Positions 2,333 through 57,000 of a stretch of DNA of 64,000 nucleotides are shown here, in pieces. The notes beneath the pieces were generated by a model. That model saw only the letters and a program-made list of their open reading frames with translations, ran no database searches and was not told the DNA's origin. This stretch comes from Klebsormidium nitens (Eukaryota; Plantae; Klebsormidiophyceae). Numbering within the stretch: the stretch's first letter is position 1; every line of letters starts with the position of its first letter. The position numbers and the translations under genes were made by a program. The DNA is taken from positions 349,355-413,354 of the forward strand of contig DF236950.1 in assembly GCA_000708835.1 (NCBI GenBank), given 5' to 3'.

Positions 2333-3601
2333 TTAGGGCTTCTTGGAAACTGTTCTCCAATCCACCCCCGAAGAGCTCCCTCCCGTGTCCCTCTTAGGCC
2401 TTCCGCGTCTAGCTGTGGGCTTTGCAGAGGGCTGGCTCTCTTCAAACAATCGGCCCGGGTCAAGGTCAGCGTCCTTTGGCTTGCTTGAGTGCAGCTTGGC
2501 CTTCATAAGGGCCTGCTGTGCTACACCAAGCATTTCCCCACGCCCCTTGAACTCCAGAAGCTGCCCTGGTGGCAACGCGCGATCCGACCGCTGACTGGCC
2601 GCAACACCATAGCTACTTTTCAAGGCTTCTTCCGCCTCCAATTCTGTTTCCTGCAGCCTCCGCTCCTCAAAAGTCTTCGCTAGACTGCTCTTCTTCTGCT
2701 CTTCCGCCTCGTCCCATTGCTTGACCCTCCTCCTTGCGCGCCTGGCCTCAGAGGGATCCTTAATCACCCCAGCTTTGACCGCCCAGCGCGCCGCCTCCTT
2801 CTTCTCCTCCTTTTCCTTCTTGTCCAGCTCAAGCTGAATGTCCATGCTCTTCAGCTTGAACAGAGCGGTCCTGTAGACGTCCTGGCCTGACTCCGCGCCT
2901 TTACCCTTGCCTTGCATTGCAGCTTCCTGCATATCGTCAACATCGACCTGCCTCACATTGTTCTTAATCTCCGGCAACTGCAGCACGATAGCTGCCATCT
3001 CACCCACGTCAAGTGTCTCTTCCTTGCTGCGGAGCACCACTTTGTTCAGCTCCCCCTTCTGCAGGGGCTTTATCGGCGCAGCGCTCGTTGCCAACCACTC
3101 AAGATACTTTTTACTGACCTCCCGCAGCATTTTCCCTTTGTGCTCGCCCGACGTCAACCGATAGTTCAGCATTCTGACAAGCTTTGGGTCAGTCGTAATA
3201 CTTTTCCCTCCCCCAATGAACTGTGCATACTTGGCAAGCTTCTTCTTAACCACGGTCCGCTTGTCCAGCCGCTGCGCACTTCCCGGAGTGGTAAAACCCT
3301 TTCCTTCACAAAACTCCCGAGGTTCCGGCATGTCTTTCCAGTATCGAGGTTGTATTTTTCTAGGCCAGTCTGCAGCTGACGCCTTTTCTGTACCTTTTCC
3401 ATCACCAGGGCCTGCCGCTGCGAGAACAAATAGCCCAGGTCTTATCTGTGTTTGAGCTCCACCTATCCGAACTGCAAAGAGACTTGCAGCACCTTCAAGC
3501 ATATGACGGGCATTCCGACCATCTTGACTACCAAGCGCGAGCGTGCGGCCAAACGAACATTCCCGAACTAATGATGCTTGTGAGCAAACCTCAAAGGCCA
3601 T
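2333..3601 (-). CDS. Intronless 422-aa protein, probably plastid-targeted, Lys/Glu-rich, with a DUF3820/ExoX-C-like motif
   Basis: Uninterrupted ORF from ATG 3601. The N-terminal ~60 aa are Ser/Ala/Arg-rich and end VLAAAG (transit-peptide-like). Internal motif LTSGEHKGKMLREVSKKYLEWLA; charged helical C-terminal half. Confidence 0.75.
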   Translation of the reverse strand: MAFEVCSQASLVRECSFGRTLALGSQDGRNARHMLEGAASLFAVRIGGAQTQIRPGLFVLAAAGPGDGKGTEKASAADWPRKIQPRYWKDMPEPREFCEGKGFTTPGSAQRLDKRTVVKKKLAKYAQFIGGGKSITTDPKLVRMLNYRLTSGEHKGKMLREVSKKYLEWLATSAAPIKPLQKGELNKVVLRSKEETLDVGEMAAIVLQLPEIKNNVRQVDVDDMQEAAMQGKGKGAESGQDVYRTALFKLKSMDIQLELDKKEKEEKKEAARWAVKAGVIKDPSEARRARRRVKQWDEAEEQKKSSLAKTFEERRLQETELEAEEALKSSYGVAASQRSDRALPPGQLLEFKGRGEMLGVAQQALMKAKLHSSKPKDADLDPGRLFEESQPSAKPTARRGRPKRDTGGSSSGVDWRTVSKKP

Positions 3602-4332
3602 CCTTGCAGGTCCAGGATACCGTAAGTGGCCCTAACCCTCCTGCTTTGCGCCCTTGCCCACTTTTCACTGCCCTCCTGTCAAGTTTGGAATTGCCAATGC
3701 TGCCATTGCTGGCTGCGTCCAAAAGTTGCAAGCAGACTCAATGTGGAAAACTACCGTACCTAGCATAAGGGATGGCAGCGGCAGAGTCGCAGCCATCTCA
3801 CAACGATTTGATGACTGACGGCCGTTCGACCAAGACAACATGGACGGTTCAATATGCTTCTTGGTCCGACGGTGCTCGCCGCGCTTCGTCCGCAAATCGA
3901 CGGCCTTTGAAGTGCGCCAAACTCTTCCTGGCTGGATCGAGAGTTCAAATTTGAAATCGTGCTCTAGCCTTTAAGCTTGGACTCGTCACTCTTCTTCTCT
4001 TGCCACAAGACTCGTGGACGGTGGCATTGAAACTTGAAAGCAATTTGAACGGTGCACAGGCAGCAGTACCTAAGGTGCCTAGTGACTAGTCCCAGTGTCT
4101 TCTCATCTCTTCTGAGGCGGCAGGCATTCATGTTGAATCTGCTCTTTGCGCCAGCCTTTTGGCAGGTGTTTTTGCATGGGGACGTGGTTCAAGGAAAAGT
4201 GCCAACCCGTTAGCGAAGAAGAGTCCAGTGTGTGATACAGAACGCTTTGTGTAGGGACATGGACAAAGTGAGGGCAACTGAAGCTGACTGATCTGTATTC
4301 TGAAAGCAATACTTTTCCAAGTCTGCACTAGC

Positions 4333-7300
4333 ATGGGTAGCGCAGGGGATTTGGCGGGAGCCATGAACAAGGTAAGCATCTAACATCTACATGATCATGT
4401 TCATAGATGCCTGTGGACAGTCAGTCGACCAAGACCGTCTGCATGAGCATCAGGACGTCAAGAGCTTGGCAAGTCGGCCGCTGAAGACCGATCACTGACT
4501 GGACGGGACACTCGAACCTCAAACACTGACCTGGCAGCCTAGTATGCTTGCGAGAGTTGCTGAAAGACTTACAGCAGCACTCTGCTGCAACGCAGATTGC
4601 GTCTCTGGAACAAACGATAATTCGTCTAGAGGGGGATCTAGCACGGAGACGTGTTCAGTTTGAGAACCTGGAGTCTTCACTCCAAAAAGGACAGAAGAGC
4701 CTTGCAGAGGAGAGAGCAGAGAGAGAAGCCCTTCAGAAGGTACAGAAAACTTCCTACCTCGCATCCTGTTTCCATAAAGTGCTAATAGGCTTGCAAAAGT
4801 CCGACCAACACTTGCTTTCAAGGACATGATCTGTGTATACAGGAGCAGCCACGCAGGGGCCAAAGTAGGAAGCAGATCAGGTTGAGCCCTCTGTTTGAAG
4901 CATGATCTGGGACCATGATGCACGGAGCAGTACGAGGCTTGTGATGATCGATGTTGCATCCCTTGGCTGCAAGTTTGAGAAGCTTGGCCGAAGTTGTCAT
5001 CCACATAATCCCCCATGCAGGACTTCCTCAGGCTGCAGCGACGAAACGATGAGTTGGAGCAGTTGGGAGAGGCAAAAACCAAGGTGCGCATTCGTTCATA
5101 AAACGGCAGACTATGACTAAAGCGAAGACCTGATCACATTTTGATGTCGATCTGCTGTCAAATTGGGCATCCATTTGCTATCGAAACTTACTTTCTCAAC
5201 TTATTGAGATTGTTCTTGGATTTCTGGTTTCTGGCCCTTCCTTTTTCCACCTCTTTAGTGCATAGTTGCAGCACCACATCATGCCTCTGCTTGACTTGAC
5301 ACACTGCCTGTCAAAATGTGGTTGTGCAGGAAGTCCGTGTCCGCAGCGAAGCTTGCTCTTTACTGGAAATCCAATTGAAGAAAACACAGCAAGAGAGAGA
5401 CGAAAGCGCGGTAGCAGAGCGCCACCTTCGGTCCAAACTCGCTGACTTGGCAGAAACAGTGGATGGGCTTTCACGAGACAACAAGGAGGTATGCAGGCTG
5501 ACTATTCATTCCTTCAAGCTTGCCATTGTCCTCTCTGCCGCAAGTTTTGCACTGGCCCACAGCATATCGCATCATGCCTGTTTAATAAGAGTGGATGGCT
5601 TGCTTTCGACCTCTTCAGTAACATTTGAGATTTGTTGCTGTGCAGCTAAGGAAGCAGCTGGTTGGGGAGAGGAATCAAGCTGAGAACTTGCAGAGACAGG
5701 TTGAGAAACAGAGGGAGATTCACGAACGATCTATCCACCAACTAAAGTGCAGGTAAAGCCAGTCTTCTTCTGCAACGAAACTGTGATTGAGATAGTTTTA
5801 ATTCTTGCAGAGTTAATTCATGCCAACCTATGTCCCACAGCATAGCGCACACGCTTCATGACATGGGCACTTTCCTGAACGCACATTTTATTCTACAATT
5901 AGATACTGGATTCAAAGAGACTTCGTAAACTGCTTTCAGTCCCAGAATATGCAATTTAGAGCGTGTCTTTCGGCGTTGCAAGCAAATGTATCTGACTACA
6001 TCTCTCTTTGCTCTGGACAGTCTCTCAGAGAAGGATGGGAGCCTCCAGCAGGTCAACCGCACCCTTGCTTCACAGCAAGAGGAAGCATCCCATGCAGGGC
6101 ATCGTGCACAGCAAGCAGAAGCGAGCGCCCAGAAGCTGCGCACGGAGCTGGCGGCAGCACTGCACGTCACAAGCAAACTGCAGGAGCAGTGCGATCGTCT
6201 CCAAGAGCAAGTGGCGCAGGGGGCTAGTTCAGCACAGCATGCCCAAGAGGCGCAAGGCGCTTCTGAGCGGAGGTGCTCGACATTGGAAGCAAAGGTGAGG
6301 CTGGCCCGCACATGTTGAGGCACTGTAATAGCGTGATATTTGTCAAGGGGGTCCGCCGCGTGGTTTGAAGAATGTGGGTTGGACGTGTCCCAAGCGTAAC
6401 CGGTGTTTAGAATCGAAAAGTTGCGCCTGATTTTTGAAGGGTGACTGTTCACGAACGGGGTTGCACTTTTACTGCTCTTCTGAGATTTTACACTTCTTTA
6501 CTGAGGTAGCTTGCAAGAGAACTGGGAAACTTTATACTCATTCAAACATTTTCTGACTGAAAAGACGCCAGCAAAGATTGCACCGTTTCGTCCTTCTTGC
6601 AATCAGGACGAAACTACCGTAGTAAAAGTTGCAAAATAGTAGAGTAGTAAAGTCGCAACGCAGTTTGGCCTAAAACATTGAAGCAGTCTTCACACCAAGA
6701 CTCAAAAGCAAAGATTTCAATCTTGTACCTGCGCTCTTGAAGCCGGCTTCCCCAGATACGAAAACTGGTCCTAGTAGCATTGCCAGGTGAGGCAAGTCAG
6801 ACTTCCAATCAACGATTTCTGAAAAATCTGCTGCGCTTTTCCAGGTGGCAGAGCTGGAGAAGGAGCTGACTGCCGCACTTACCGAGCGTTCAGCCAAGGA
6901 AGCGGCCTTTGCCGGACAGAGCCAGATGGTCGAGGTTCTCTCCGCTGAGAAAGTCAGTCTCACCAACGCACTTGAGACGGCCCGGAAGGATGCGGTCCAG
7001 GCAAAGGACGCTCACGCAAGCGCGGCCAAACGGGTTCAGAGCCTTCAGCAGGAGTTGTTGGATGCTTCAAACCACTTAGAGCGCCTGAAAGAGGCTGAGG
7101 GTTTGGTGGCGCAGCTGACAGCCGAAGTGAAGGAGAGGGAGGAGAAGTGCGCCGCCAGTGAGCAAGCGGTGGTGAGCCTGCAGTCGAAGCTCGGCACAGC
7201 GGCGGTCGAAAAGAGGGATTTGGAGTCGAGGGTTGGAAAGCTGGCGGACGACTTGAGTGCAGTGACGGCTCTTCTCGAGGATGCGCGGGTGCGGCTGGGT

Positions 7301-10300
7301 AAAGAAGAGGAGGGAAAGAGGGTGCTGGAGGCTCGGCTTGAAGCCCAAACGGAGGAGCTGAAGAAAGCGGCTGCACAGGAGGGGACGCAATCCGCAGAAC
7401 TGGAAAGGCTTGCTAGGGAGCTTGAGCAGTCTAAGGATGCGGCGACTGGCTTAGCGGTTCAGCTGAAGGAGGTCGACGCTCGCTACCGCGAAAACGAGGC
7501 GAAGCTGCTCGAGTTGCGGTCGGAGGCGGAGGCCAATTTGAAGCGGGTGGACGATGCGGAAAGGGCGGCGGCGGAGAGCCTCTCGGCACTGGAAGAAAGC
7601 CAGGCCCGGGAAGCCGCCCTCGCGGGCAGGGTCAAAGAGCTGGAGAGCTCGAGGCGGCTGGGGGAGAGCTTGTCGGGGGCGCTGAAAAGGGAGGTCGTCG
7701 AGAAGGCACAACAGCTGGCGGCATGCCGCGCCGAGCTTGCGGCCCTGAGCAGCGGGATGGAGTCCGTCAAGGAAGGGGCGGACCAGCGGGCGCAGGAGCT
7801 CGCAGGCTGGGAGGAAAAGTGCTCGCTTCTGGAGGCGGAGGCGGGGCGAAAACTCGAGCAGCTGCGGTTGGAGAACGGGGCTCTAAGCCAGCAGTTGCAA
7901 GCGCTGGAGTCGCAGCTGCAGGAAGCGCGGGGAAAAGTCCGCCAGAACGAGGAGGCGGTTCTGGCTCAGCAAAGGAAGGTGTTTGAGTTGGAAGGACTGG
8001 TTGGGGCTGCGAAAGAGGAGCGGCTTGCACGGGAACTAGAGCGGACGGCTCTGCAGGCGGAGCTTGACACATTCGGGGCGCAGTTGCGGGAGAGCAGGGT
8101 CGCGCTGCAGTCCAAGACCAACGAGTGCGCGGAAGCTGTGGAACGGTTGCGGACGGTGGAGAGCTTCCGAGCAGAAACGGAGGGGGCGCTTAAGGGCGAG
8201 GTGGCAAGACTCGAGGAAGCCCTCTCAGCAGCAGAGCGGACAGCTGACGGCATGGCCGAACAGAAAAAAATAGTGGAAAGGAAGTTGAAAGAGGCCGAGA
8301 TGAAGCTGGAAGCCGCAACGGGGTTGAAGGATGCGTTGCAGGGAGAAGCGGAGGAGGCCCAGATGCGCCTCGTGGAAGTGGAAAGCGAGCTTGAGAAGAC
8401 ACGTGGCACCCTTTTGGAGACCGAAGAGAGGCTGTCCGTGACTGCACGGCTGGCGGAGGAACGCGCAGCCAAGCTGGTCGAGGCTGGGAAGGTGGAAGCG
8501 GTCTGGCGGGGAAGGTTGGAGGGGATGGAGGCAGACTCTCAAAAGAAGGAAGCAGAAATGCTTGGGCTTGTGCAAGAAGTGGATGCTTCAAAACATCGCT
8601 GTGCTGCTGTCGAGCAGGAATCGGGTCGGGCCAACGAGGAGGTGGCCCACTTGCGCGGGGAGGTGGCAAAAGCGAAAGAGAGGAGTGCGGCAGCGGAGAG
8701 GGAGACGGAAGAGAAGCTGGCTGCGCTCGAAGTCGAGCTGAAGAAAGCGCAGGGAGAGTTGGCCGCGAAGTGTGAGGAAGTGGCAGTGCAAGCGTCATGC
8801 CTGGCCCAAATGGATGCGCTCGTACTGCGGGCGGAGTCTGCTGGAGAGGAGGCGGCTCAGACGGAGAAGCTGTTGGAAGAAGCGGTTGCCAGGCAGCAAG
8901 CTTTGGAGGAGTCGCTGTCGAGGCTGAGCCGGGAAAAGGACGAGAGAGAGCGGCGGGTGCGGGATCTGACGGAGGCTCTGGCGGCGAAGGAGCGGCTAGT
9001 CGACGAAGGGGAGCGTCGGGAGAGGGGGAGGGAGGCGGAGCTAAGAGCGAGGGAGGAGGCTGCGGCTGCGCTGGAGAGAAGCTTACAAGGAGCGCAGGCC
9101 GAAGTCAAGGCGAAGGCAGACAAGCTTGCTGAGTTGGAGTCGATCCTAGCGGGTGGCGAGAAACGGGCGGGGGAGTTGGCGGCCGTGAGCAGAGCGCTCG
9201 AGGAAGAGAAGGAGGCCCTTGTGCGAGACTTCGAAGCCAGGGGAGGTGCGCTCGAGCGGGCGGAAGCGACGGCTTGGACTGAGAGCGGAAGGGCTTTGGC
9301 CCTTGAGGCTCAGCTGGCGGAACTCACGGCGGCTGCAGAAGCCACTGCCTCTGAGGTGGCTCGCCTGACGGGGGAGAGAGACGGGCTGACGCTTGAACTG
9401 GAGGCGAGGACGGAGCAGCTGGCCACCAGCAAGATGGCGGTCGCCTCGCTGACCGAGAAGTTGGACGCAGTCGAGCGGGAGCTTTCGGTCAGGAAGGCAG
9501 CGGGTAAGGAACGAGAGGAAGGTCTGCAAGCGGAGCTGAGTGGTTTGGTTGGCAGGCTCGACGCTGCTGAGGCGGAGCTTTCGGCGGGCAGCGATCGGTT
9601 GGCCGCCAGCGAAGAGAGGGAACGGAAGCTCCAGGGAGCGGTGGAGGCGCTTCGTCGCCAGCTTGACACGTGTCAGATCGACCTGGAGGCGGGGCGCAAG
9701 CACCTAGTAGCGGCAAGCGGCCAGTTGGCGCAGTCTCAGGGACAATTGTTGGCGAAGGAAGCTGAGATCCTGGAGCTTAAGGCGCAATTCGAAGGGCTGG
9801 AAGCAGTGCACAGCCAGCAAGCCGCGCGGTTTGCAACGGAGAAGAAGGGGCTCGAGGAGAGGGAGGCGGAGGGGCGGGGCAAAGTGGAAGCCATGGCGGT
9901 GGCCTTGGAAGCGGCGAGGGGTGCGCTGGCGGCCGGGGGCGACAAGGAGGGGTGCATGGAGGCGCACATCGGGGTACTGGAAAGGCGCCTCGAGGACAGA
10001 GAACGCGAAATCGAGACTCTGTGGAAGGAGGTGGCGGCTGTTACGGACGAACTGGGAAGCCGGGAAAGCGCGGCGCAGCTGGCGAGGCTCGACAACGTGG
10101 AAAGCAAGATGAGGCTGGCGGAAATTGAGGCGGCGCTGGCTGCAGCGAACGAGCAGAAGGCGCGGCTGAGCGGCGAGTTGGCGGCGGCGCGGGCGGATTT
10201 CGAGCGGAGCGGAACGGAGCTAGAGCGGAGCCGGGAGCGAGCTTCGCAGTTGGAGATGGAGCAGAGGCAGCGGGAGGAAAGTTCCGGCGCGCTGAGTGGA

Positions 10301-13300
10301 GCGCTGACTGCGGCGCAAGAGAAGCTTGCGGCGGCGCAGCGGGAAGTCGGGGAGTGCCGGGCGGCACTGGGAGCCGCGCAAGCGGACGGAGAGGCCAAGT
10401 CGGCGGAGCTCGCCGCGGTCAAGCTGCTGCTCGAGAAGTTCGCGCTGGAGGTCGAGGGCCTGACGGAGAGCCGGGAGAAGCTGGCGGGCGAGGTCGCGGC
10501 CGCCCTGGACGCGCAGTCTGGCGCTGAGCAGCAAACTGCACAGTTGTGCAAGGAGCTTGAAGAGTTGGTGGAGGCGAAGCGGGAGGTTGACATTGAGATT
10601 TTGGGGTTGAAGTCGCGGCTCGAGCAGGGGGCGGTAGTTGCACATCACATGGAAGAGGCGAAGACGGAGGTGGCGCGGTTGGAAGCGGAGGTGCGGGCAG
10701 CAGAAAGCCGGTGCTCCGCACTGGAAAGGGCGGTCAACGATGAGAGGGCGGTTGTTGCAGCCAGAGACGAGAAGATCGAACAGCTGCAAGAGGCGGCCCG
10801 GGTGAAGGAAGAGACGACGGCAGGGATGCGGAGCGCCTTAGACGAGGCTTTGGAGGCAGAGAAGATGCTGGAAGCGAGCGCTGAGGAGCTTTCCGCCCAG
10901 GGTGCGAAGGCTGAAAAGGAACTCTTGGAACTTCAAAGGCAGCGGGAAGAAGGATTGGGGAGAATCACAGAACTCGAACGTCAGCTGGAGTTGACGCAGG
11001 CCACCTGCAAGGATATCTCGGCCGAAAAGCAGGCTTTGGCGGAGCAAGTCGAATGCGGGCAGGCCGAGAATGCGGCTCTGTTGGGAAAGCAGCGCGATCT
11101 GGAGTCCGCCATCCAGCAGCTGAAGACAATCAAGGAGCGGACGGCGACCGAGCTGCAGGCACAGCTAGACTCGGCGGTCGCCGAGAAGGCCCGGATGTGC
11201 ACGGAACTAGAGGCGGCGACTGCTGACGTGGCGGAGCTGCGGGCAAAGGAGAAGGTGATGGAGGGCAGCCTGCAGCAAGTGGTGGCCCTGGCTCAGAAGA
11301 TCGACGGCCTGGAGAAGGAGAAAAAGCAGCTCCAAACGGCGGTCGGAAAAGGTGGGCAGGATGCGGGGGCGCTGAGCGAGGCGCTGGCGGCAGCACAGGA
11401 GCGGGCGGAGAAGCTGCTGTGGGAGCTGAACGGGAAGATTCAGGTGGGGCTTCGCTTGCAATGTGGGGACCGTCGGTCTGGTCAGCCTCTTCGCATTTCA
11501 CCAATCTTCGGAAGTAGGATGAACAAGCCCGTTATAGGATGTTCGGCTCATCACCTTTTACAAATTCAATGTAACTTTTTTTGCGTTCTTCACTTTCTCT
11601 TGATAAAGACAATTTTGCGCGAAAGTGGGGTTCGATCAGCGCACATGCTGGGCATGCAACGCTACGGTTCAAGCGCTTAGCTTCCGCTCAAGTATAACGG
11701 CCAGAGAAAGCAAGTCGTAATTCCTCCGGCGAAGACAACTCTTCAGTTGCCACGCTGGCCAAGAAGGCACATGATGCTGCCTTTGGCTGTTTCTTCTCTC
11801 CCTTCTCTCTTCTAAATGCAGTTACTTTTGAATAAGTATTTTTCCACGCTCGTACTGCTAACGAAGGCAGTCGAAAGCTCACGCAGCTTACGACAAGTTA
11901 CTCCGCTTGAGTTGCTGAATTATCTCGCTCTGCTCTGAAACCCTACCGATAACGAGTGAACTCCGTTTGGTCAGGTGCTGGAAGCCAAGAACGGGGCCCT
12001 GGAGCACATGAGCGCTCAGCTGCAAGGCGCCGAAGCCAAAGCTGAAGAGCAGGCCGCCAGCTTGGCTGTACAGGAAGACCAACTGCAAACCCTTCGTGAG
12101 ACTATCGCTCATCTCGAGGACTCCCTCCACTCGTACAAGGAGTCCGGAGACAGCCTGCAGAGGACGATTGGCGAGCGGGAAATCAGCATCGAGACTGGGA
12201 ACCGCGATATCGAACGGCTGCAGACGCTGCTGGAAGAGAAGCGGGTCAAAGTTGAGGGGATGGCGCGGGAAGCGGCAGAAGCAAGCAACAGGCTGGCTCA
12301 GGTCGAGGAGTGCGTGAGCGCTTTACAGGCGCAATTGACCAGTGCCCAGAAGGAAAGCAACGGGACGGAATCCAGTTTGAAGGAGCTAGCGGCGGCGTTG
12401 CGCGGGAGAGAGGCGGATGTCGACAGTCTGCGCGCGGAGAAAGCGGCGCTCTGCGGCGAAGTTGAACGGTTCAAGGGGCAGATGGAAGCGGCCCTGAAGC
12501 GAAGGGAGGCCGTAGAGAGTGGCGCGGCGCTGACGTCGGCAGAGCTGGAGCGAGTGGGGCGGGAGTTGGAGGCGATGCGGGCGACGGTCTCGGCCCTGGA
12601 GGTGAAGCGTAGCGAAGAGGAGCTTAAAAGTCAGCAGATGGAAGCGGCGCTCGCCGACAAGGACGGCCACGTGGCCGAGGCGCGTGCGGCGCTCGAAAGC
12701 GCGCGCGCCGAAGGGGCGCAAATCGCTAAAGAGCTCGACGCTTCGCGCGCAGTGGTCGGCCTCCTGCAAAAAGAACGGGGGGTGCTGATCGACAAGATGC
12801 ATCAGCTGGAAGCGGTGGTGACGTCAGCGAAGGCCGCCCTGGCGGAGAGCGAGCGGCTGTACTCAGAGTCGCAGGAGGCGGTGAAGGACGCGGGCGAGCT
12901 GAGGGGACAGCTGGCGGAAGCGACGAGCGCGCGTGTGGAGGTGGGCCGGCAACTAGAGGAGGCGCTGGCGCAGATCGAAAGAGAGAAAGGGGCGGCGGAC
13001 GAGTGGCAAAAGAAGGTCCGGGTGAGGCAACTGATCTGCAAATCTGCCGATTTTAATGCCGATTGGCTTTTCTGACTTTGATCGCGACCATAGTGGACAC
13101 CGATAAGGCAAGTTGATCAGTGCTGCTGTTTTCAATAGCATGACTGCCCTGGTCAACCCCTCATAACAAGTTGATCCATTACGAGCTCCCTCAGGTCCTC
13201 TATCAGATCAGGCTGATTGACCCCAATCGCTTTGAATCTGGTATCTTTGACGGACTATTAAAATCCAATGTAGGTTTCATTGAGCCCTGATTATTCATCT

Positions 13301-16300
13301 TGACGTCTTTGCCCCAACGTTCCTCCATTTCAGGAGAGCGAGGCAACGGTGGCTGCCCACTTGGCCGCCCTGGACGCCCTCCAGCTCAAGGTCTACCGCC
13401 TGCAGCAGTCCGTCGTTGAGGGCGACACCCAGAGGCAGCAAGCCGAGCAGGCGGTCGCCCTCCTGCACTCCCAGCTCGAGGCCCTGTCCGGAGAGCAGAG
13501 TGCATACGCCCAGACAGCGCTGCACCTCTCCCAGGAGGTGGAGCAGTCCCACAAGGCCCTTTCTGCGGCGCAACGGGAGCTGGAAGCGCTGGAAGACGGG
13601 CGGAGGGGCAGCGAGGCGGCGTGGCGCACTGAAAAGGAGACACTGTGCGAGGAGATCAGCATCTACATGACGCAGGTGGAAGAGTTGAACGGGGAGCTCA
13701 AGGCAATGCGCGTGGAGAAGGCGGAAACGGAAGCGGAGATAGCGGACATGCGGGCGAGGCTCGAGCAGGTGAGAGTGCTGCCCTGAGCGGTGCTTAATAT
13801 AACTCTCGCCGGAAGTAGCCGTTCATGATTCCGTCCGTCCAAATGACGCTCCTGTTCTCAACGGAGGGACTATGGGGTCCTTCTGTTGACTGAATCAAGT
13901 TCAGAAGCCCTAGGCTGTGCCTTTCAGGGAGCACGCAAGTCGAACACAGGCAACAGCTTTGTACAGATCTTGTGTCGAAAATTGCATTTCATGGTGCTGG
14001 CTCAACAGTCGAAAGCTGGTCCTCCCGGCGTGTCACCCTGGCTCGTGCCTTGCTCTCGGGGCTTCCGCAAGTCGTAAAGGTGAAAAAACTCCTTGCGTTC
14101 CTCAGGTAGGGCTCATCTCCGACAAGCTCCACGAGATTCAGCGGGACAGAGTAGAGGAGAAGCGCCAGATGGACGCCACGTCAGAAGACCTCGAGGTGAG
14201 CCGTCAACCAGGAGTGTCCCAAGCAGCACGGCTAGAAACTCGTAACCAACCCAAAGTCGGATTTGCAACGTCTATTGGCACGTTCTTCATACGGTACATG
14301 GGGCCGACTCGATTCCATAAAGTAAGGGCTTCAGAGACGTCAACAACTTGTTCGGCTAGTTGTGTCCGCAACCAGAACGACCCAGTCATGGGCCCGTGCG
14401 TGGTGGGGTTTCACTCCGGCCCGCTCTGGACCGAACCTGTTCACATTACGTGTTCGGTCCAAGCACATGCGTTCTTGGTTTCTTCCTTGTCAGCTGGTCC
14501 GCAAGGAGCTGGCGCGCGGCACGGCCGCCACGTCGAGCATCATGGAGCAGCTGGAGCGGACGCTGCAGGCAGTCACCGCCAAGGACAAGCACCTCGCCAC
14601 GCTGCAGGTGACCCCTCTTGAACCTAAAGGGCCTTGAAAAAGACGACTTTTGCTGGATCGTCAGACAGGGCGATCATTTTCATTGAGGTGCATCTCCTGG
14701 CCTCAAGGTTCTGTTTTGCGGTTGGCTTTCTGTCTATTTCCACTCCAAAAGCTTCCACCAAAGCTCTTGAGTTGAACTTTTCCTTTCAACTGGCAGAAAT
14801 CCATCTAGATTCTGATATCGTCAAAGTCAACTGATTTCCTTTTCAGTGCCAGCTTGCAATTCAGCAAATCATCATTAACCCTTTGAAGAAGGACGTTCTC
14901 ATAACCTGTAGCGCTGACTCAAAGCCGTCGCACCGGTGCAGGCGGACCTTGCCGCAGCGGAATCCGTCATCCTACGGCAGCAAGCGGGCTTGGCTCACGA
15001 GTCCCGCACCGCCGCTTCCCTGGTCAGCAAGCTCAAGCAGCACCAGGAAAAGGAGCGCCGCATGGAGGCCGCGATGCACGCCCTGCGCGCGCGCCTCCTG
15101 GAGTCCGGCCAGACTGCTCCGGAAGCGGAAGTCTTCCAGGTGAGGATGGTTGAGTCCAGGCATAAGCTCCTAGTAGGAACATCAAGCTCCCAAGTGACCT
15201 CAAAAGAACCGAAAACTATTATTCTAGCGGCTGCGCACCCTCTCCCAACCTATTCGCACACGTCCCGGGTGATAAGTCCTGCCACTTTTACAATCTTACA
15301 TTCGACACTCGTTTCCAGGTGGGCAGCCCGGTGAAGGTCCCCGGGCGCCCCTGGGGCGAGGACGCGGCCGCGGAGGAGCGGGTGGTGGAACAGGAACTGG
15401 CGCTGAGGCTGCAGCAGGCGCAGGCGGAGCTGCGGCGGGCCAACCTGGAGATTGACGACATGCGCACCAGGTGGGTTTTCGCTGACGATCCACGTGGCGG
15501 GATCTGGCTTTCCCTTATTACGGCCAAGGCAGGCCCCCGTGGCCATGTCAGGCGTCCTAGCCAGAGCCCCATCCGAGGCAGTCTAAATTCAAAAACTTTC
15601 CATCAACGGGCGCCGATGGTGAACAAATACTTCACGCAGATGCTTGGAAGTTCAAGGGCTTGGAAGTGCCATAAGAGACAGGTATCGAGACTAGTTTTCG
15701 GTGGTGCTTCATATCCATGATCAGGAAGTCACAAAAGTGTGTAAAAGCCATCGGACGCTTTAGCAGAGCATCCGTGTTCTGTTCGTTTTTGTAATGCGTA
15801 GTCGCTGTGACTAGTTGCTCAAATGCGACGCAATCGCTTTTTAGGAATTTTTGCCTTTCTGTGAAACCGAACGATCAGCCTCAAGTGGCCTTCTATCAAA
15901 ACGCAGGGATGCGATTTGTTCTTGGCTTGTCCGTACGGCCTTAATGCGTGATTGTGGTTCTGTTTGCATGAAGTACTAGCGCAGGCTTCGACGACTCACG
16001 TCTGAAGGCGGTCTTTCCAAAGCTTCTCTCTTTCTTTCGCAGACTGTACGGCGACCGGACGCCCGCCACCGGGAAGCACCCCCGGCAGGAGGCATCGCCC
16101 GAAGAGGTGCAAGAGTTGCAGGTGGCCGTGAAAGACCTGCAGAGCGAACTGGCGCTGGAGAAGGCAGCGCACAACGCCACCAAGCAGGCGCTCATTGAAG
16201 AGCAGGGCCGCTTCGCGACGCAGCTCCAGGAACTGCAGGTGGGAACCGCTCCGGTTGACGTCTTTGGAGTGTCGGAATGTACTCGAGCGCTGAAGCATGT

Positions 16301-18651
16301 ATGCCTCTGCTGATCAAAATTGTTTAAGGATTGCAGCAGGTCGAACAGCAGTGCCACGTCGAATCAGTATGAATTGGGACTTGGCGCTTCAGTGCAACGC
16401 CCAAACGTTGGCAACAAGACTTTCGAGCAGGAGTTGTGACCTAGTCAAAGTTGAGAACCAGATGTTTTGCGCTTAATTGATGTAACGTGCATTTGTTTCG
16501 ATGAAATGGTCTGTCTCCTTCTCACCTTTCAATCCTGCAGACTGTCCCAGTGCTCTGATTGATCACGCACTTCCACACGATCCGGAGGTTCGATCCAATC
16601 TTTTCTTTGCAAAGAGTGTTTGTTATAGGCAGATGGTGAGCCATTCAATCCCTTTTCTTGTCGCAGGAACTGATTCAGAATATGAACGGGGGAGCTGCGG
16701 GCGGTGCTTCGGAGATGCCCCCCATCCAGGAGCTGGCGATCTTGAGGGCACGTGTCATCGAGCTCGACATGCGTCTCGCCATGGCACGCTCTGACGGAGA
16801 CGGGAAGAGCGGAGCGATCACCGGAGCCGCAGGCCAAGGTGTGACTTGCAGAGATCAAGCTTTTTCTTTTAAAGAGTTGTCGAACATGATTGGTTTGCTC
16901 TGTTTGTTTCCAAGTCTCCATTCCCAACAAAGCAAACAACCAACAAAGGTGAGGGGTGTTTCTCAGGGACTATCGACTCCGTTCCAAGAGCCTCGGGTCA
17001 GTGGTTTATCACCTTTTCGCAAAGCTGGCTCTGCCGGCCCTTTCTTCACGCCCGACCTTCAACCTTGAGCTGCAATCCTTTGTTCTCAAGCTCCCTGCAC
17101 ATCGTCTCATTTTGTATATTGCGACACGCAACCGAGTCCGAAAATGCTAAGAACCACAAGCTTTGCTCTTCAAACCAGCTCCTCTCTCAACCCGCCTTCC
17201 ACTCGTCCGCAGACTTTGTTCTCGACGCTTCCGTCGAGGACGGGCGCGAGGACGCGGCTGCTGACGGCACGCCTGACGTGTACGAGCTTCAAAAGATGGT
17301 CGCAGCCAAAGAGGAGGAGCTCAATTACTTCGTGGAACGATGCGAGTCGCTCATGAGGTGAGGAGGCGTTTTGCCATCTGGTAATCAGGGAACGGGTATA
17401 ACAAGCATGTCCAGGTTTTTGTAGTTGTTTGCAATGGCCGAGCTAGTGATTGATTATCGGATTCTGCAGAATCTGAAACACTGGTCGGAATCCATTCAAA
17501 AGAAGCGACATTCAAAATCGAACTCGTGACCAAGCGATGTCAAAGTGAAAAAGTTCCGATCAACGAGTTTTTATCTCAAGGTCCGTATCTGTCAGTAGTC
17601 AGCTTGTTCTGACTGCAGGATGACTTTTGTGTGTCATACACTCGTGGTACCCAAAATTATGGTTCCTTTCGTCGAAACCTTGGTTCTGCCAGCCTGACTC
17701 TTGGCGACCCCTACTTATCAGCTCTGCTCGTGCCACTTGTGCAGAGAGAACACGAGCCTCAAGAAGAAGACGGCCAGCTTGGAGAGCCGCGTGCGAGGCC
17801 ACCAGATGCGCCGGAGGGCCGCCGCTGACGCGGCGGGCCCTGCCCCAGCAGCCAAGCCCACAAACCAGCCGGCCGCGCCGCCCAAGGACGAAGAAACGGG
17901 GCCTCCAGGCGCTCCGATTGAGGACGGTGCCCTGATTGCAGAAAGAAGAGTCAGCGAGGGACGCGTCAGCCCTTTGGGCCCCAAACCACCGATTCAAAAC
18001 TCGCTGTGTTCAGGGAATGTGTCCAATGAGGGGTCAGAGGGGGGGAAGTCTTCGCAGAAAGAGTCTGACCAGGAGCAGAAGGCTGCAGTGCTTGACGGCA
18101 AAGTCCCTCAGAACACATTCCAGCCGCTGTTGGGCGTCTCTTCGTTGCGAGCGGACGATCTGCTGGACCTTGGGCCGGAGGAAGGCGGTCTCGACCTGAT
18201 GCCACGTCAGCAGAGCGAGGAGAGCCGCAAGCGCCACGTGGCACGCGGGGTCGGGGGCTACGAGGCTTCCCCGGGCACCGCCCGGGGACTGAAGGTTGCG
18301 AGGACTCGGAGCGTGGGGGCGCTTGTGGAGGCGCGGGGGCTGCAGGCCCTGCTGTTGGGAAGAGGGGGATCCCCCGAGCTGTCTGGTCGTATCAGCTCCG
18401 TAGACAAGCCCTCGCTTGCGGTGAGCGACAAACGCGCTTCCCTGGGGGCTGAAATCGGTCCCAAATCGGCGAAGAGTTCACCGAGCATGGAGCGGTCGCC
18501 TCTGGCAGTCATGCAGCTCTCAGTGGAAGAGGCGAAGGCTTCCCCGGGGGGCGTTGAGAAGGTGTCGCCGAGGATGGCGGGGCCGGCCATTCAACCGCTC
18601 CGTCTGTCGGGCGAGTTTACCAGCCTTCTCCAGGAAAACCGAGACGTGTAG
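4333..18651 (+). CDS. Giant coiled-coil protein (~2,944 aa, 17 exons), CENP-F-like at both ends
   Basis: Phase-consistent GT-AG exons: 4333-4371, 4596-4739, 5021-5083, 5330-5488, 5646-5752, 6021-6294, 6845-11443, 11975-13015 (or 13021), 13334-13768, 14106-14195, 14494-14607, 14942-15139, 15319-15470, 16043-16238, 16667-16838, 17213-17357, 17745-18651. Continuous E/A/L/R/K/Q heptad-rich sequence, then a Pro/Ser/Gly-rich tail. A further 5' exon cannot be excluded. Confidence refers to the gene model, not the CENP-F assignment. Confidence 0.85.
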
Positions 18652-54061: not shown

Positions 54062-57000
54062 TCAGGCTAAAGTGGCCCTCTTCCCCTTGCCCTTGCTGTC
54101 ACCGCTCTGCAAACAAACGTCAAAATCAGGTCAAGGAACATCTTTGGCCACCCACATCGTGCCCGTGATCAATCGCAGCTTAGGTTGCAAGGGCGAACAC
54201 AAGCAAGGAGCAAGCAAATATTCGATTTTCACCTCAGCGCAGGAAACGACACCTGCAGACAAAACCTGCTCTTGCAACATCCGGCGTTTCAAGTCACGAC
54301 AGAGAACTTGCATATGCACTCGGCAAAAGCTCCACCTTCTGATTCTGTCGGCGGCTTACCGTCGTGCTCCCTTTGGCGCTCCTGGCGCCCACGAACGAGT
54401 CGTAGATGTCGTTCAGCCTCATGCGCTCCGCTGCCGGCACCGACGGGCGCGCAGACAAAGCCGCTGCCTTGAGCTGCTCCATGCTGATCTCGGGCGAGCC
54501 CTGGGTGGGAGGCCCTGTTTTCGGAGGGGTTGCGTCCAGGAAGCGGTGCACGGCGGACAGCTGCGCGTCGCTCAGGACGGCCTGCAGGTCCGCTCCGCTG
54601 AACCCGTCCGTGAGGCGCGCGATCTCGGCCAGGTCCACGTCAGCGGCCAGAGGCAGCTGCGGACACAGAGGGACTCACGATCAGCGAGAATTGAGCTGAC
54701 TAGACAACGTTCAAAGATACTGGTCTCACCGCTCTTCGAGTAACGTAAAGTTTCTCCCATCGTTCAGTCTCCACAACAAAAGAACAAGCAGACTGGTTCC
54801 TGAATTCGATGCAATATGAAATCCCTTCGCATGCATTAGCATCGAAACCAACCTGGTACGACAGCGCTCTACTGAATATGCTCCAAGGCCGGCGAATGCG
54901 CCGCAATCCACCCCCACCCGCGCCTCGTGCGCCCCTCACCTGCTTGGCGAGCACCCCGAGGACGTCCCGCCGCTCAAACTCGTTCGGGAAGTCGCAGAGC
55001 AGCAGCTTGTCGAGTCGCCCCGGGCGCAGCAGCGCGGCGTCGATCATGTCGGGCCGACTGGTCGCCGCAAGCACAAACACCCCGGTCAGTCCCTCCACGC
55101 CGTCCAGCTCAGTCAGCAGTTGGTTGACCACCCGGTCGGTCACCCCGGTGTTGTCGTGGCCGCGCTTGGGCGCGATCGCATCGAACTCGTCGAAGAAGAG
55201 GATGCACGGCGCGGCGGAGGAGGCGCGCTTGAACACGTCGCGGACCTGGAAGGTGGGCCGGTTAAGATGGTCGAACGAGGAAAGACGCGTTTTGAATGCT
55301 GGGTCAAAGAAGCTTCGTTTGTGGTAGAGGACCGACAAATTAGATGTAGGATACAGTAGAAAAGCAAGGGGGCCTGTACGCAGTAAAACTTAACATTCCT
55401 GAAAGATCTCGAATTCACAGGGCACAGCCACGCATTCCTCAAAGCGAGCAGGCAACTTATCCGTCCACATGGAAACCGGTCTCAAGCCCAGGCATATTGG
55501 GTTAAATCTGATCGGTTAACAAGGAAAACCCTGTAATTGGTGAAGCTTCTCATCTGTGCCACAACCTTTTGGACTACGCGTTTGTATTAAAGAGAATCTT
55601 CGTCAGCAATCATAAAATGGTCATACAAACAGCATCTCCGAAAAGCGGCGTGGTCGTCCCCACTCACCGACTGCTCGCTGGCCCCGATGTACTTGTTCAG
55701 CAGCTCGGGGCCCTTCACCCCGACAAACCGCAGCCCGCACGCGGCCGCCGCCGCGCCCACGATGTGCGTCTTTCCACACCCCGGGGGGCCGTACAGCAGC
55801 ACCCCCGACCGCAGCCGCAGCGGCGCTGACGCAAAAAGGGCCGGAAACTTGGCCGGTAGCTCCAGCGTTTCTTGTAGCGCTTGCCGGACTTCCGATAAAC
55901 CCCCGACGGAATCCCACCCCTGCTTGGGCGCACCGTCCGCGCCCCCAACTGCAACGCCGCGCATGGCCGCCGGCACAAACCCGTCCCGCGCTTCCGTAAG
56001 GTCCTCTTCCGACAGCTCGAAACCGCTCGGCACTCCCCCGGGAAGGTCCGCTTGCTTCGGAGTATGGACTTCGTGTCTGCCTGCCTCAGATGCTTCTTCC
56101 ATTTTCTCCAATTTGCCGTTTCCAGGAGACGCATCGTCATTCCGAAAAGCGCCTGTTGCCGCATCTTCTCGGCCCGGAGTGTCCCACCTCACGGCAGCCG
56201 TCGAAGGCCCTGCGGAACCATCCCCCGCAACTTCCGCCTGGCCCCCCGTGCCCACACCCCGCCCTACGGGGCCTCCCAGGTATCGTGCGGCCGCAGCATG
56301 GGTGGCTCGATCAACGAAAACCTCAACATCTGTCGCATCGTAGCCGTCCAAATGCTGAGCGGCCTCTCGAGCGACACCTGGCGCAAGCTGCAAGCCCTTC
56401 GCCGCAACCGCTGACGTCAGCATGGCTGCACGATCCCCGGGCGCAGGGGTGGGAATCTCGACGTGGAAGTCGAAGCGGCCCGACGCGAGCAGCGGCTTTG
56501 CGAGAGCCTGAGCGGACTTGGCGATGGCGAGGAAGGCAACCGCAATCGGCTGCCGGTCGCCGTCACCTGGAAAGACATGGTTATTGCTAAGTATAACGGT
56601 CGCGACGAATTGAACAAACGCTGTCTGTCCTAAGTTTTTTGAGGATGCCAGAAGACGGACGGCCAAAGAAAAGAAAACGCCCACAAAGCAGCTTACCTAA
56701 CATACAAGTGGCTCATTAGACCGCCTCTACCAGCTGCGAAGGACAAGCGCTGCTCGTCAGAAGCTGCCAAATGGAAAGCAAGACCCATAATTTTCCGGCA
56801 GTCCTGCTTTTGAGTCGTCGCAAAGCTTGAAACTTTTGTTCATCCTCACCTTGGCAGTTGTCCAAGATGTCCGCCAAACCTTCGGCAAGCGCCCGCGCCC
56901 CTTCTGCCGCGTCCCCCATCTCCGGCCCCTCGTGCGAGCCCGCTACGGAGTTCAGATCGTCCAGAATGACCAGCGCCGGTGCGCACTGGACCGCGTCCGA

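Follow-up and report, generated by a model that had tools for sequence, protein, structure and literature searches.

CENP-F/mitosin, described from animals, Salpingoeca and Capsaspora, is a protein of ~3,000 amino acids, nearly all of it coiled coil. Comparative genomics has placed CenpF only in Holozoa and has inferred a post-LECA origin for it, which makes it one of the few kinetochore or corona proteins placed after LECA (PMC5579357). In the human protein, the N-terminal tubulin- and microtubule-binding site needs the first 100 residues (PMC4477864), and residues 2922-2990 form the minimal BUB1-binding piece, which binds the kinase domain (PMC6028960). CENP-E, a kinesin-7 that has been proposed as a distant paralogue of CENP-F and whose very long coiled-coil stalk likewise has ends that are functional, is pan-eukaryotic (PMC6028960, PMC10630089), and an old filament of the CENP-E/F type is therefore plausible.

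We analyzed a 64,000-nucleotide stretch of genomic DNA (the window), for which an initial annotation made from the letters alone had proposed a CENP-F-like coiled-coil gene in a green-lineage genome, while holding CENP-F to be an animal-type protein without a plant orthologue, in keeping with its published range. The genome is not human but that of Klebsormidium nitens, a streptophyte alga and a host outside the published range, which is confined to Holozoa. We found that the algal protein shares with CENP-F/mitosin the size and architecture that had been claimed for it, having a first coiled coil in register with positions 16-110 of the CENP-F_N profile and a rod that is followed by a disordered, Pro/Ser-rich basic tail (230-285 residues across these proteins). 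In contrast to CENP-F/mitosin, it lacks the MSW..EWK..GL cap, its first coil is not followed by a Pro/Ser-rich insert (profile positions 111-304 have no counterpart), a kinetochore-targeting/BUB1-binding coil is not supported, and it has no CAAX box, Rb-binding motif, KEN box or internal tandem repeats. Unlike CENP-E, it has neither a kinesin motor domain nor a CAAX box.

Gene structure and selection

The giant coiled-coil gene is real and belongs to the nuclear genome of Klebsormidium (Table 1). A product of ~2,940 amino acids had been predicted at 4333-18651; our own model and the deposited annotation of contig DF236950.1 (GCA_000708835.1, Klebsormidium nitens/flaccidum) both arrive at 2,946 residues for this locus. 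In our model, all introns of the 17-exon gene are GT-AG and the phases are consistent, and the spliced protein begins with MGSAGDLAGAMNK. The junctions of exons 1-12 are kept in a second Klebsormidium contig, L002, including the 5021 acceptor that had been chosen from the sequence alone, and one difference is the exon-5 donor, which is GC in L002. The L002 start codon is an ATG 9 nt farther upstream than that of K. nitens, and the L002 protein begins with MSSISSGEDLAGAMNK.

Comparison of the two Klebsormidium sequences reveals an uneven pattern of purifying selection. Amino acid identity is 92-96% in exons 2-5 and 77% in the rod, and the head, with a dN/dS of 0.058 versus 0.30 for the rod, is under stronger constraint than any other part of the gene. 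A second constrained block lies at aa 2290-2423 (dN/dS 0.086).

Table 1. Features of the K. nitens coiled-coil gene, in positions of the window
Feature	Position	Strand	Observation
Whole gene	4333..18651	+	17 exons; CDS 8,841 nt, 2,946 aa + stop; matches annotated product length
Exon 1, aa 1-13	4333..4371	+	Start region poorly conserved; no W..EW cap
Exon 2, aa 14-61	4596..4739	+	Core of CENP-F_N-like coil; 14.7 bits alone (profile 20-66); 96% identical in L002
Exon 3, aa 62-82	5021..5083	+	CENP-F_N-like coil continues; junctions kept in L002
Exon 4, aa 83-135	5330..5488	+	CENP-F_N match stops at aa 104, nt 5395; 94% identical in L002
Exon 5, aa 136-171, phase 2 end	5646..5752	+	Gene model; GC donor in L002
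Exon 6, aa 171-262, coiled coil	6021..6294	+	Gene model, Pfam scan
Exon 7, aa 263-1795	6845..11443	+	Main acidic Ala/Glu/Leu-rich coiled-coil rod; 77% identical in L002, dN/dS 0.30; no database relatives found
Exon 8, aa 1796-2144, rod	11975..13021	+	Gene model
Exon 9, aa 2145-2289, rod	13334..13768	+	Gene model
Exon 10, aa 2290-2319	14106..14195	+	Second highly conserved block begins; 93% aa identity in L002
Exon 11, aa 2320-2357	14494..14607	+	97% nt identity and 100% aa identity in L002
Exon 12, aa 2358-2423	14942..15139	+	Conserved block ends; dN/dS 0.086 over aa 2290-2423
Exon 13, aa 2424-2474	15319..15470	+	Gene model
Exon 14, aa 2474-2539	16043..16238	+	Gene model; beyond end of L002 contig, hence without orthologue support
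Exon 15, aa 2540-2597	16667..16838	+	Gly/Ala-rich break in coil
Exon 16, aa 2597-2645	17213..17357	+	Last coiled segment starts at aa 2618, nt 17275
Exon 17, first part, aa 2645-2661	17745..17793	+	Last coiled segment ends
Exon 17, remainder, aa 2662-2946 + stop	17794..18651	+	285-aa Pro/Ser/Gly-rich, mildly basic tail; ends ENRDV; no Pfam domain, CAAX, KEN or relatives

Similarity of the head to CENP-F_N

The initial annotation rested on two peptides, which we located at residues 10 and 2618 of the spliced protein, and on fragments of human CENP-F, which occur verbatim in Dataset EV1 of van Hooff et al. 2017 (PMC5579357). Its identity counts were reproducible at both the N end (16/53) and the C end (11/44). 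The N-terminal likeness was also upheld by profile comparison, since CENP-F_N (PF10481) is the top Pfam family on residues 1-135 (E 4.5e-6), although its score of 27.0 bits falls short of the curated gathering score of 37.7. The runner-up family on these residues is ~500-fold worse. Residues 10-104 match profile positions 16-110 without a gap over 95 residues, pairing the two N-termini with an offset of 6 residues, and the match takes in no more than about a third of the domain, which has 304 positions. Exon 2 alone scores 14.7 bits, and extending the sequence over two splice junctions lifts this to 27.0 bits.

HMMER E-values on coiled coils are known to be optimistic (PMC3695513), and the head similarity was chosen out of a scan, which places a look-elsewhere burden on its statistics. 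In ten 135-residue windows of the rod, CENP-F_N gave no match at E<=0.05, and other families there scored at most 22.6 bits. When residues 16-90 of CenpF from Nematostella, Salpingoeca and Capsaspora were compared, ungapped, with ~2,870 positions of the K. nitens protein, each ranked residue 10 best, with 21, 17 and 17 identities over 75 residues, respectively (23-28%); the same holozoans share 21-24 of 75 among themselves (28-32%). An HMM of three non-vertebrate CenpF sequences scored the head segment at 27.3 bits; human CENP-F, run as a control, scored 56.6 and the next site, in the rod, 6.2. As decoys, 491 natural and 9,820 shuffled rod windows reached at most 12.9 and 16.7 bits. None of 5,000 heptad-preserving shuffles of the head segment attained the real score (maximum 24.0 bits). 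Without its 15-residue MSW..EWK cap, CenpF of Capsaspora, a true though distant orthologue, reaches just 35.9 bits over profile positions 16-110 and so falls under the gathering score too, and the K. nitens head reaches 75% of this value; the LMP family scores 25.7 bits on the Capsaspora coil, a level to which coiled-coil noise can rise. Given the rod windows, the shuffles, the holozoan ranks and the capless Capsaspora control, we conclude that the similarity of the head to the CENP-F N-terminal domain is more than chance and is specific and in register, as opposed to a generic coiled-coil resemblance.

This signal escapes routine annotation, as the deposited protein shows just faint CCDC39 and Golgin_A5 matches. 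The three-sequence profile scores the head at 25.0 bits on residues 1-135; within the complete protein, whose composition is biased, this drops to 18.7 bits, and the Pfam match is presumably lost in the same way.

The cap, MSWxxxEWKxGL(P/S), is the most diagnostic feature of the family; it occurs in all holozoan CenpF sequences of the orthologous group as published and contributes ~32 of 68 bits in Capsaspora (68.1 with it, 35.9 without). It is absent at both Klebsormidium N-termini, and we found no W..W motif upstream in any frame. With a pI of 5.7-6.7 the head is not basic, and it has no equivalent of the basic Pro/Ser-rich insert seen in animal CENP-F, so that microtubule binding is not evident.

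An alternative is a structural coiled-coil protein peculiar to the Klebsormidium lineage and unrelated by descent to CENP-F, its N-terminal likeness having arisen by convergence or chance between two heptad sequences that each start a long rod. Such an origin would accommodate a CENP-F_N match under the gathering score, the 22-26 bits that unrelated coiled-coil families score on similar windows, the published restriction of CenpF to Holozoa (PMC5579357), and the cap, CAAX, Rb-binding motif and C-terminal targeting coil being absent or at noise level. Our searches, which were badly limited, likewise recovered no relatives outside Klebsormidium and no intermediates in other lineages. However, convergence or chance would have to produce a family-specific, collinear match, gapless over 95 residues and running from N-terminus to N-terminus, that ranks first with all three of the highly divergent holozoan sequences, is unmatched by any heptad-preserving shuffle, and coincides with the segment where constraint on the gene is strongest. 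We regard this explanation as a serious contender that nonetheless sits well short of even odds.

The rod, the C-terminal end and the tail

The rod is nearly free of proline (0.4%), and self-BLAST of the protein revealed no internal tandem repeats. Matches to CENP-F_leu_zip (PF10473) within it score 13-22.6 bits, versus a cut-off of 34.5, and speak neither for nor against CENP-F, because this model ranks with the 20 most promiscuous ones for coiled coils (PMC3695513). Membership of another long coiled-coil family, such as a golgin, TPR/NUA, lamin-like NMCP/CRWN or centrosomal/basal-body CCDC protein, might be read from the precomputed weak or faint Golgin_A5 and CCDC39 matches on the annotated protein and from scattered sub-threshold matches to TPR_MLP1_2, Nucleoprot-TPR, Filament, Cep57_CLD and HAUS1. 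Yet all of these lie at arbitrary positions, far under curated cut-offs, and dozens of other coiled-coil families score just as well. In our Pfam scan, no golgin, TPR-NUA or other named coiled-coil family exceeded its curated cut-off, and no GRIP/GRAB, transmembrane, NAB, motor or other terminal domain was found. Golgins, TPR/NUA, NMCP/CRWN and crescentin-like rods share with the algal protein a heptad-rich rod and sub-threshold Pfam matches, but it lacks their terminal signature domains, and their profiles stay at noise level, unlike CENP-F_N on the head. We consider such membership highly improbable.

At the other end of the protein, the tail (aa 2662-2946) is disordered and mildly basic much as had been described, with 9.5% P, 11% S, 12% G, a pI of 9.0 and the ending ENRDV. 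It has no CAAX box, as the initial annotation had itself noted, there being no Cys at position -4. Since Capsaspora CenpF likewise lacks a CAAX box, this feature is not universal in the CENP-F family. The Rb-binding motif CENP-F_C_Rb_bdg (PF10490) gave no match at E<=10 on aa 2645-2946 and, judged by eye from published CenpF sequences, seems confined to deuterostomes. Neither a KEN box nor any Pfam domain was found in the tail.

The alignment of the last coiled segment with human CENP-F did not hold up. The human fragment used for it falls within residues 2922-2990, and it matches best, ungapped, at the algal rod end. Together with the head similarity and the agreement in size and layout (a rod, a last coil and a disordered tail of ~230-285 residues), this match would suit a full CENP-F orthologue in which both ends are conserved, the last coil recruits the protein to the kinetochore or nuclear envelope as human 2922-2990 does, and a corona-like role is retained. 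However, an HMM of three vertebrate C-termini scored -1.6 bits at aa 2620-2662, only the third best site in the protein. The ungapped rank of this site is 1 for human and 4 for both Danio and a third vertebrate, and about 100th for the end-of-rod segments of Salpingoeca and Capsaspora. The conserved vertebrate YC motif is also out of register, and the CAAX box, Rb-binding motif, KEN box and cap are all absent. A CENP-F C-terminal targeting coil at this position was rejected as coiled-coil noise on the basis of the profile score and ranks, and we consider a full orthologue quite unlikely. The CENP-F-like reading as first proposed is half right, in that its N-terminal alignment stands and its C-terminal alignment does not.

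Discussion

Our results indicate that, in its head, the K. nitens protein is probably a distant relative of CENP-F that lacks the cap; orthology and a kinetochore function are hypothetical. The best explanation overall, to which we assign a probability of roughly 0.5, is a long filament protein with a divergent head coil homologous to CENP-F_N. Residues 10-104 would most likely be a divergent homologue of the first CENP-F_N coiled coil (profile positions 16-110), related to it by common ancestry. Nearly uninterrupted acidic, Ala/Glu/Leu-rich heptads over ~2,400 residues presumably form a parallel dimeric coiled-coil filament, in which the constrained head coil (aa 14-135) and the C-proximal block (aa 2290-2423) would flank a fast-evolving spacer rod, with the 285-residue disordered, mildly basic tail following the C-proximal part. 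Such a protein could act as a tether that is like CENP-F in outline, the conserved ends docking partners and the rod setting the distance between them. Since the first 100 residues of human CENP-F are needed for its N-terminal microtubule site, the algal head may contribute to binding of microtubules or the mitotic apparatus.

A more ambitious proposal is that the gene is a vertically inherited CENP-F orthologue. A CENP-F-type filament would then have been present near LECA, in the ancestor that plants share with animals, instead of being born within Holozoa, and these algae would keep a mitotic component of the kinetochore, spindle or nuclear envelope that has been lost or become unrecognizable in land plants. 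We find this doubtful on the present sequence comparisons.

If the head likeness is convergent, the Klebsormidium protein is still a well-defined giant coiled coil in which two blocks are under strong constraint. If this is indeed a streptophyte relative of CENP-F, the origin of CENP-F would move back to at least the plant-animal ancestor, and a family supposed to belong to the animal lineage may be much older than thought.

Gene model and similarity of the head to CENP-F_N

By three-frame translation and splice-site reading, we resolved the giant coiled-coil gene into 17 exons, with GT-AG introns throughout and consistent phases. The coding sequence of 8,841 nt specifies 2,946 aa ending in ENRDV, a length that the product in the public annotation of this locus matches exactly. 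The neighboring single-exon ORF (window 2336-3601, minus strand) is found letter for letter on scaffold DF236950.1 of the K. nitens/flaccidum NIES-2285 assembly (GCA_000708835.1); the window thus comes from a streptophyte (charophyte) alga and is not human, and it holds nothing related to a toxin or an animal virus. The initial annotation had proposed a CENP-F-like protein from hand alignments of its two ends with human CENP-F. In our spliced protein, the two algal peptides lie at residues 10 and 2618. The human fragments of the hand alignments are present without a mismatch among published CenpF sequences (FASTA file in Dataset EV1 of van Hooff et al. 2017; PMC5579357). The identity counts, 16/53 at the N end and 11/44 at the C end, were reproduced.

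Compared with Pfam, exon 2 alone (48 aa) had CENP-F_N (PF10481) as its best family, at 14.7 bits over profile positions 20-66 and in the register of the hand alignment. Joining two further exons almost doubled the score, as would be expected of a real similarity and a correct splice model. Spliced residues 1-135 matched CENP-F_N with an E-value of 4.5e-6, and residues 10-104 lay on profile positions 16-110 without a gap (95 residues on 95 positions). The family named in the initial annotation is thus the top match, but its 27.0 bits are below the curated gathering score of 37.7. On the scale of a true ortholog, residues 1-120 of Capsaspora CenpF score 68.1 bits against the same profile; without its first 15 residues, this segment scores 35.9 bits (positions 16-111), likewise below the gathering score. 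The algal coil therefore attains 75% of the score of the coil of a bona fide distant ortholog. Profile positions 111-304 are unmatched by the algal protein. The runner-up family for residues 1-135 was Rod_CreS (E-value, 0.0024), and the precomputed Pfam entries of the annotated product are only CCDC39 (faint) and Golgin_A5 (weak); we consider membership of another named coiled-coil family very unlikely.

Specificity of the head match among coiled coils

The main rival explanation is that the head resembles CENP-F_N by convergence or by chance, as one coiled coil may resemble another, and we regard this as possible, if on the doubtful side. Heptad repeats are known to make HMMER E-values too optimistic, and CENP-F_leu_zip ranks as one of the 20 most promiscuous families (PMC3695513), so we gave no weight to the CENP-F_leu_zip matches in the rod, which are probably noise of this promiscuous family. 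Ten 135-aa windows of the rod had best Pfam E-values of 1.2e-4 to 0.033, from assorted families and with at most 22.6 bits, and none matched CENP-F_N at an E-value of ≤0.05.

We also slid residues 16-90 of Nematostella, Salpingoeca, and Capsaspora CenpF, the three most divergent holozoan sequences in the published file (PMC5579357), along all 2,946 residues (ungapped, BLOSUM62). All three scored best at residue 10 (81, 69, and 77, respectively; next-best scores, 56, 55, and 52), with 21/75, 17/75, and 17/75 identities, and they share only 21-24/75 identities between themselves. A hidden Markov model of these three holozoans gave the algal segment 27.3 bits, the human control 56.6, and the best other site in the protein 6.2. 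When the segment was shuffled 5,000 times with its heptad pattern preserved, no shuffle reached 27.3 bits (maximum, 24.0). With the same model, natural rod windows (n = 491) scored at most 12.9 bits and shuffled ones (n = 9,820) at most 16.7, and the full-length protein's 18.7 bits were reached by 0 of 1,500 shuffled whole rods. The unrelated family LMP scores 25.7 bits on the Capsaspora coil, so a score of 27 bits by itself exceeds the highest noise from coiled coils by only a small margin. The weight of the head match comes from its family-specific, collinear agreement across several species.

CENP-F hallmarks at the two ends

All holozoan CenpF proteins start with MSWxxxEWKxGL(P/S), followed by the coil (PMC5579357). 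The K. nitens protein starts with MGSAGDLAGAMNK, and that of a second Klebsormidium, whose ATG is located 9 nt upstream of the K. nitens one, starts with MSSISSGEDLAGAMNK. We looked for an upstream exon coding for the MSW..EWK cap and found none, and no reading frame of the 730 bp that separate the gene from its divergent neighbor contains a W..W motif. The algal head is an uninterrupted, proline-free coil (pI 5.7-6.7), whereas animal CENP-F has a Pro/Ser-rich stretch after the first coil. Since the start codon is unconserved between the two Klebsormidium genes and conservation begins only at DLAGAMNK, the K. nitens N terminus is a predicted one.

At the other end, the human fragment lies ~229 residues from the C terminus (~2938-2981 in 3,210-residue numbering), inside the minimal BUB1-kinase-binding, kinetochore-targeting piece (residues 2922-2990; PMC6028960), so conservation at the algal site would be meaningful. 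Against a profile built from the end-of-rod segments of three vertebrates, the algal site obtained -1.6 bits, and two other places in the protein scored higher. In ungapped sliding, the site ranked first for human, fourth for each of two other vertebrates, and about 100th for the Salpingoeca and Capsaspora segments. Of the 17 columns that are invariant in the vertebrates, the algal site shares only 6, and it does not have the conserved YC in register. Given these profile and multispecies sliding results, we reject the C-terminal homology to CENP-F that had been proposed. The algal tail has no CENP-F_C_Rb_bdg match, KEN box, or CAAX box. The CAAX box is also missing from Capsaspora CenpF, and the Rb-binding motif by eye seems confined to deuterostomes. 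Because the head falls short of the gathering score, the cap and the CAAX box are absent, and the C-terminal targeting coil is unsupported, we describe the protein as having a CENP-F-like head and not as a CENP-F family member; full CENP-F orthology is improbable.

Constraint along the gene within Klebsormidium

A word-index search with spliced residues 1-135 (candidates of 74-236 aa) returned a sole match, an ORF fragment of 98 aa in contig L002 of Logan assembly SRR23617307, which comes from a second Klebsormidium. This contig carries exons 1-13 in unchanged order, adjoining the same divergent neighbor gene, and residues 1-2423 of the two proteins align with zero gaps and 80.6% identity. Amino acid identity is 92-96% in the head (exons 2-5; dN/dS, 0.058 for aa 14-135), 77% in the rod (exon 7; dN/dS, 0.30), and 93-100% in exons 10-12 (aa 2290-2423; dN/dS, 0.086). 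With the lowest dN/dS among the regions compared, the CENP-F-like head is the gene's most strongly constrained part. The pattern is consistent with a specific role in docking and with two conserved modules between which a spacer rod evolves freely.

Several further features were observed in the two contigs (see the table below). At 0.23, the dS of exons 10-12 is roughly half the value for the remaining gene (0.42), which together with the near identity of exon 11 suggests either extra nucleotide- or RNA-level constraint or a very important protein block at aa 2290-2423.

Features of the K. nitens window and their counterparts in L002, the contig of the second Klebsormidium
Feature	K. nitens window (strand)	L002 (strand)	Observation
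Coiled-coil gene	4333-18651 (+)		
Start region	4333-4371	6064-6111	K. nitens ATG aligns to ATA; L002 starts MSSISS... 9 nt upstream, where K. nitens has in-frame TAG
Exon-5 donor	5753-5754	7482-7483	GT in K. nitens, GC in L002; intron position otherwise conserved
Exon 11	14494-14607		Protein 100%, DNA 97% identical
Divergent neighbor	2333-3601 (-)	4001-5290 (-)	Syntenic single-exon ORF, 422 aa (429 aa in L002); C-terminal half Lys/Glu-rich; no Pfam family for the 422-aa ORF; ~730-bp promoter interval common to it and the coiled-coil gene
AAA+ ATPase gene	~55590-58412 (-)		Multi-exon; Walker A motif GPPGCGKT; no Pfam match in upstream ORFs
ORF of AAA+ gene	55590-56684		Pfam AAA, 54.5 bits

Relatives and meaning of the CENP-F-like head

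Word-index searches with the exon-7 ORF (1,629 aa; candidates of 896-2,850 aa) and the tail (301 aa) returned nothing at an E-value of ≤1e-5 and no match, respectively. The longest stop-free query being 1,629 aa, full-length proteins of ~2,900-3,200 aa fell outside the length window, which ended at 2,850 aa. An exhaustive phmmer search of 1.84 billion representatives, for which 1,200 residues of the rod served as the query, gave no match; it did not return even the query's own annotated protein, so this blank is not readable as an absence of relatives, and very long eukaryotic proteins, or the K. nitens genome, seem to be missing from the library. Two metagenome scans (with rod and exon-2 alignments) found no relatives in DNA collections that hold few algal genomes. 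Given these limits of the three kinds of search, the blanks are weak evidence of absence. PDB sequence searches with exons 2 and 16 gave only noise, and self-BLAST found no internal repeats.

The published CenpF orthologous group consists of holozoans only (human, mouse, another vertebrate, two zebrafish genes, Ciona, Branchiostoma, Saccoglossus, Nematostella, Salpingoeca, and Capsaspora), and van Hooff et al. 2017 inferred that CenpF "probably originated more recently" than LECA (PMC5579357). Klebsormidium is named in none of that paper's supplementary files, and we found no report of CENP-F from a plant or alga in the literature searched.

Our best reading, with a probability of about 0.5, is that the head may be a divergent, cap-less homolog of the first coiled coil of CENP-F_N, carried on a lineage-specific rod. 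Counting in the small chance of full orthology, homology of the head to CENP-F_N is, judging from its sequence, somewhat favored. The N-terminal fragment of human CENP-F is dimeric and has a preference for curled tubulin, and microtubule binding is not seen with human fragments that lack residues 1-100 (PMC4477864). By extension from human CENP-F, it is therefore reasonable to suggest that the algal head may serve in a microtubule- or mitosis-related docking site.
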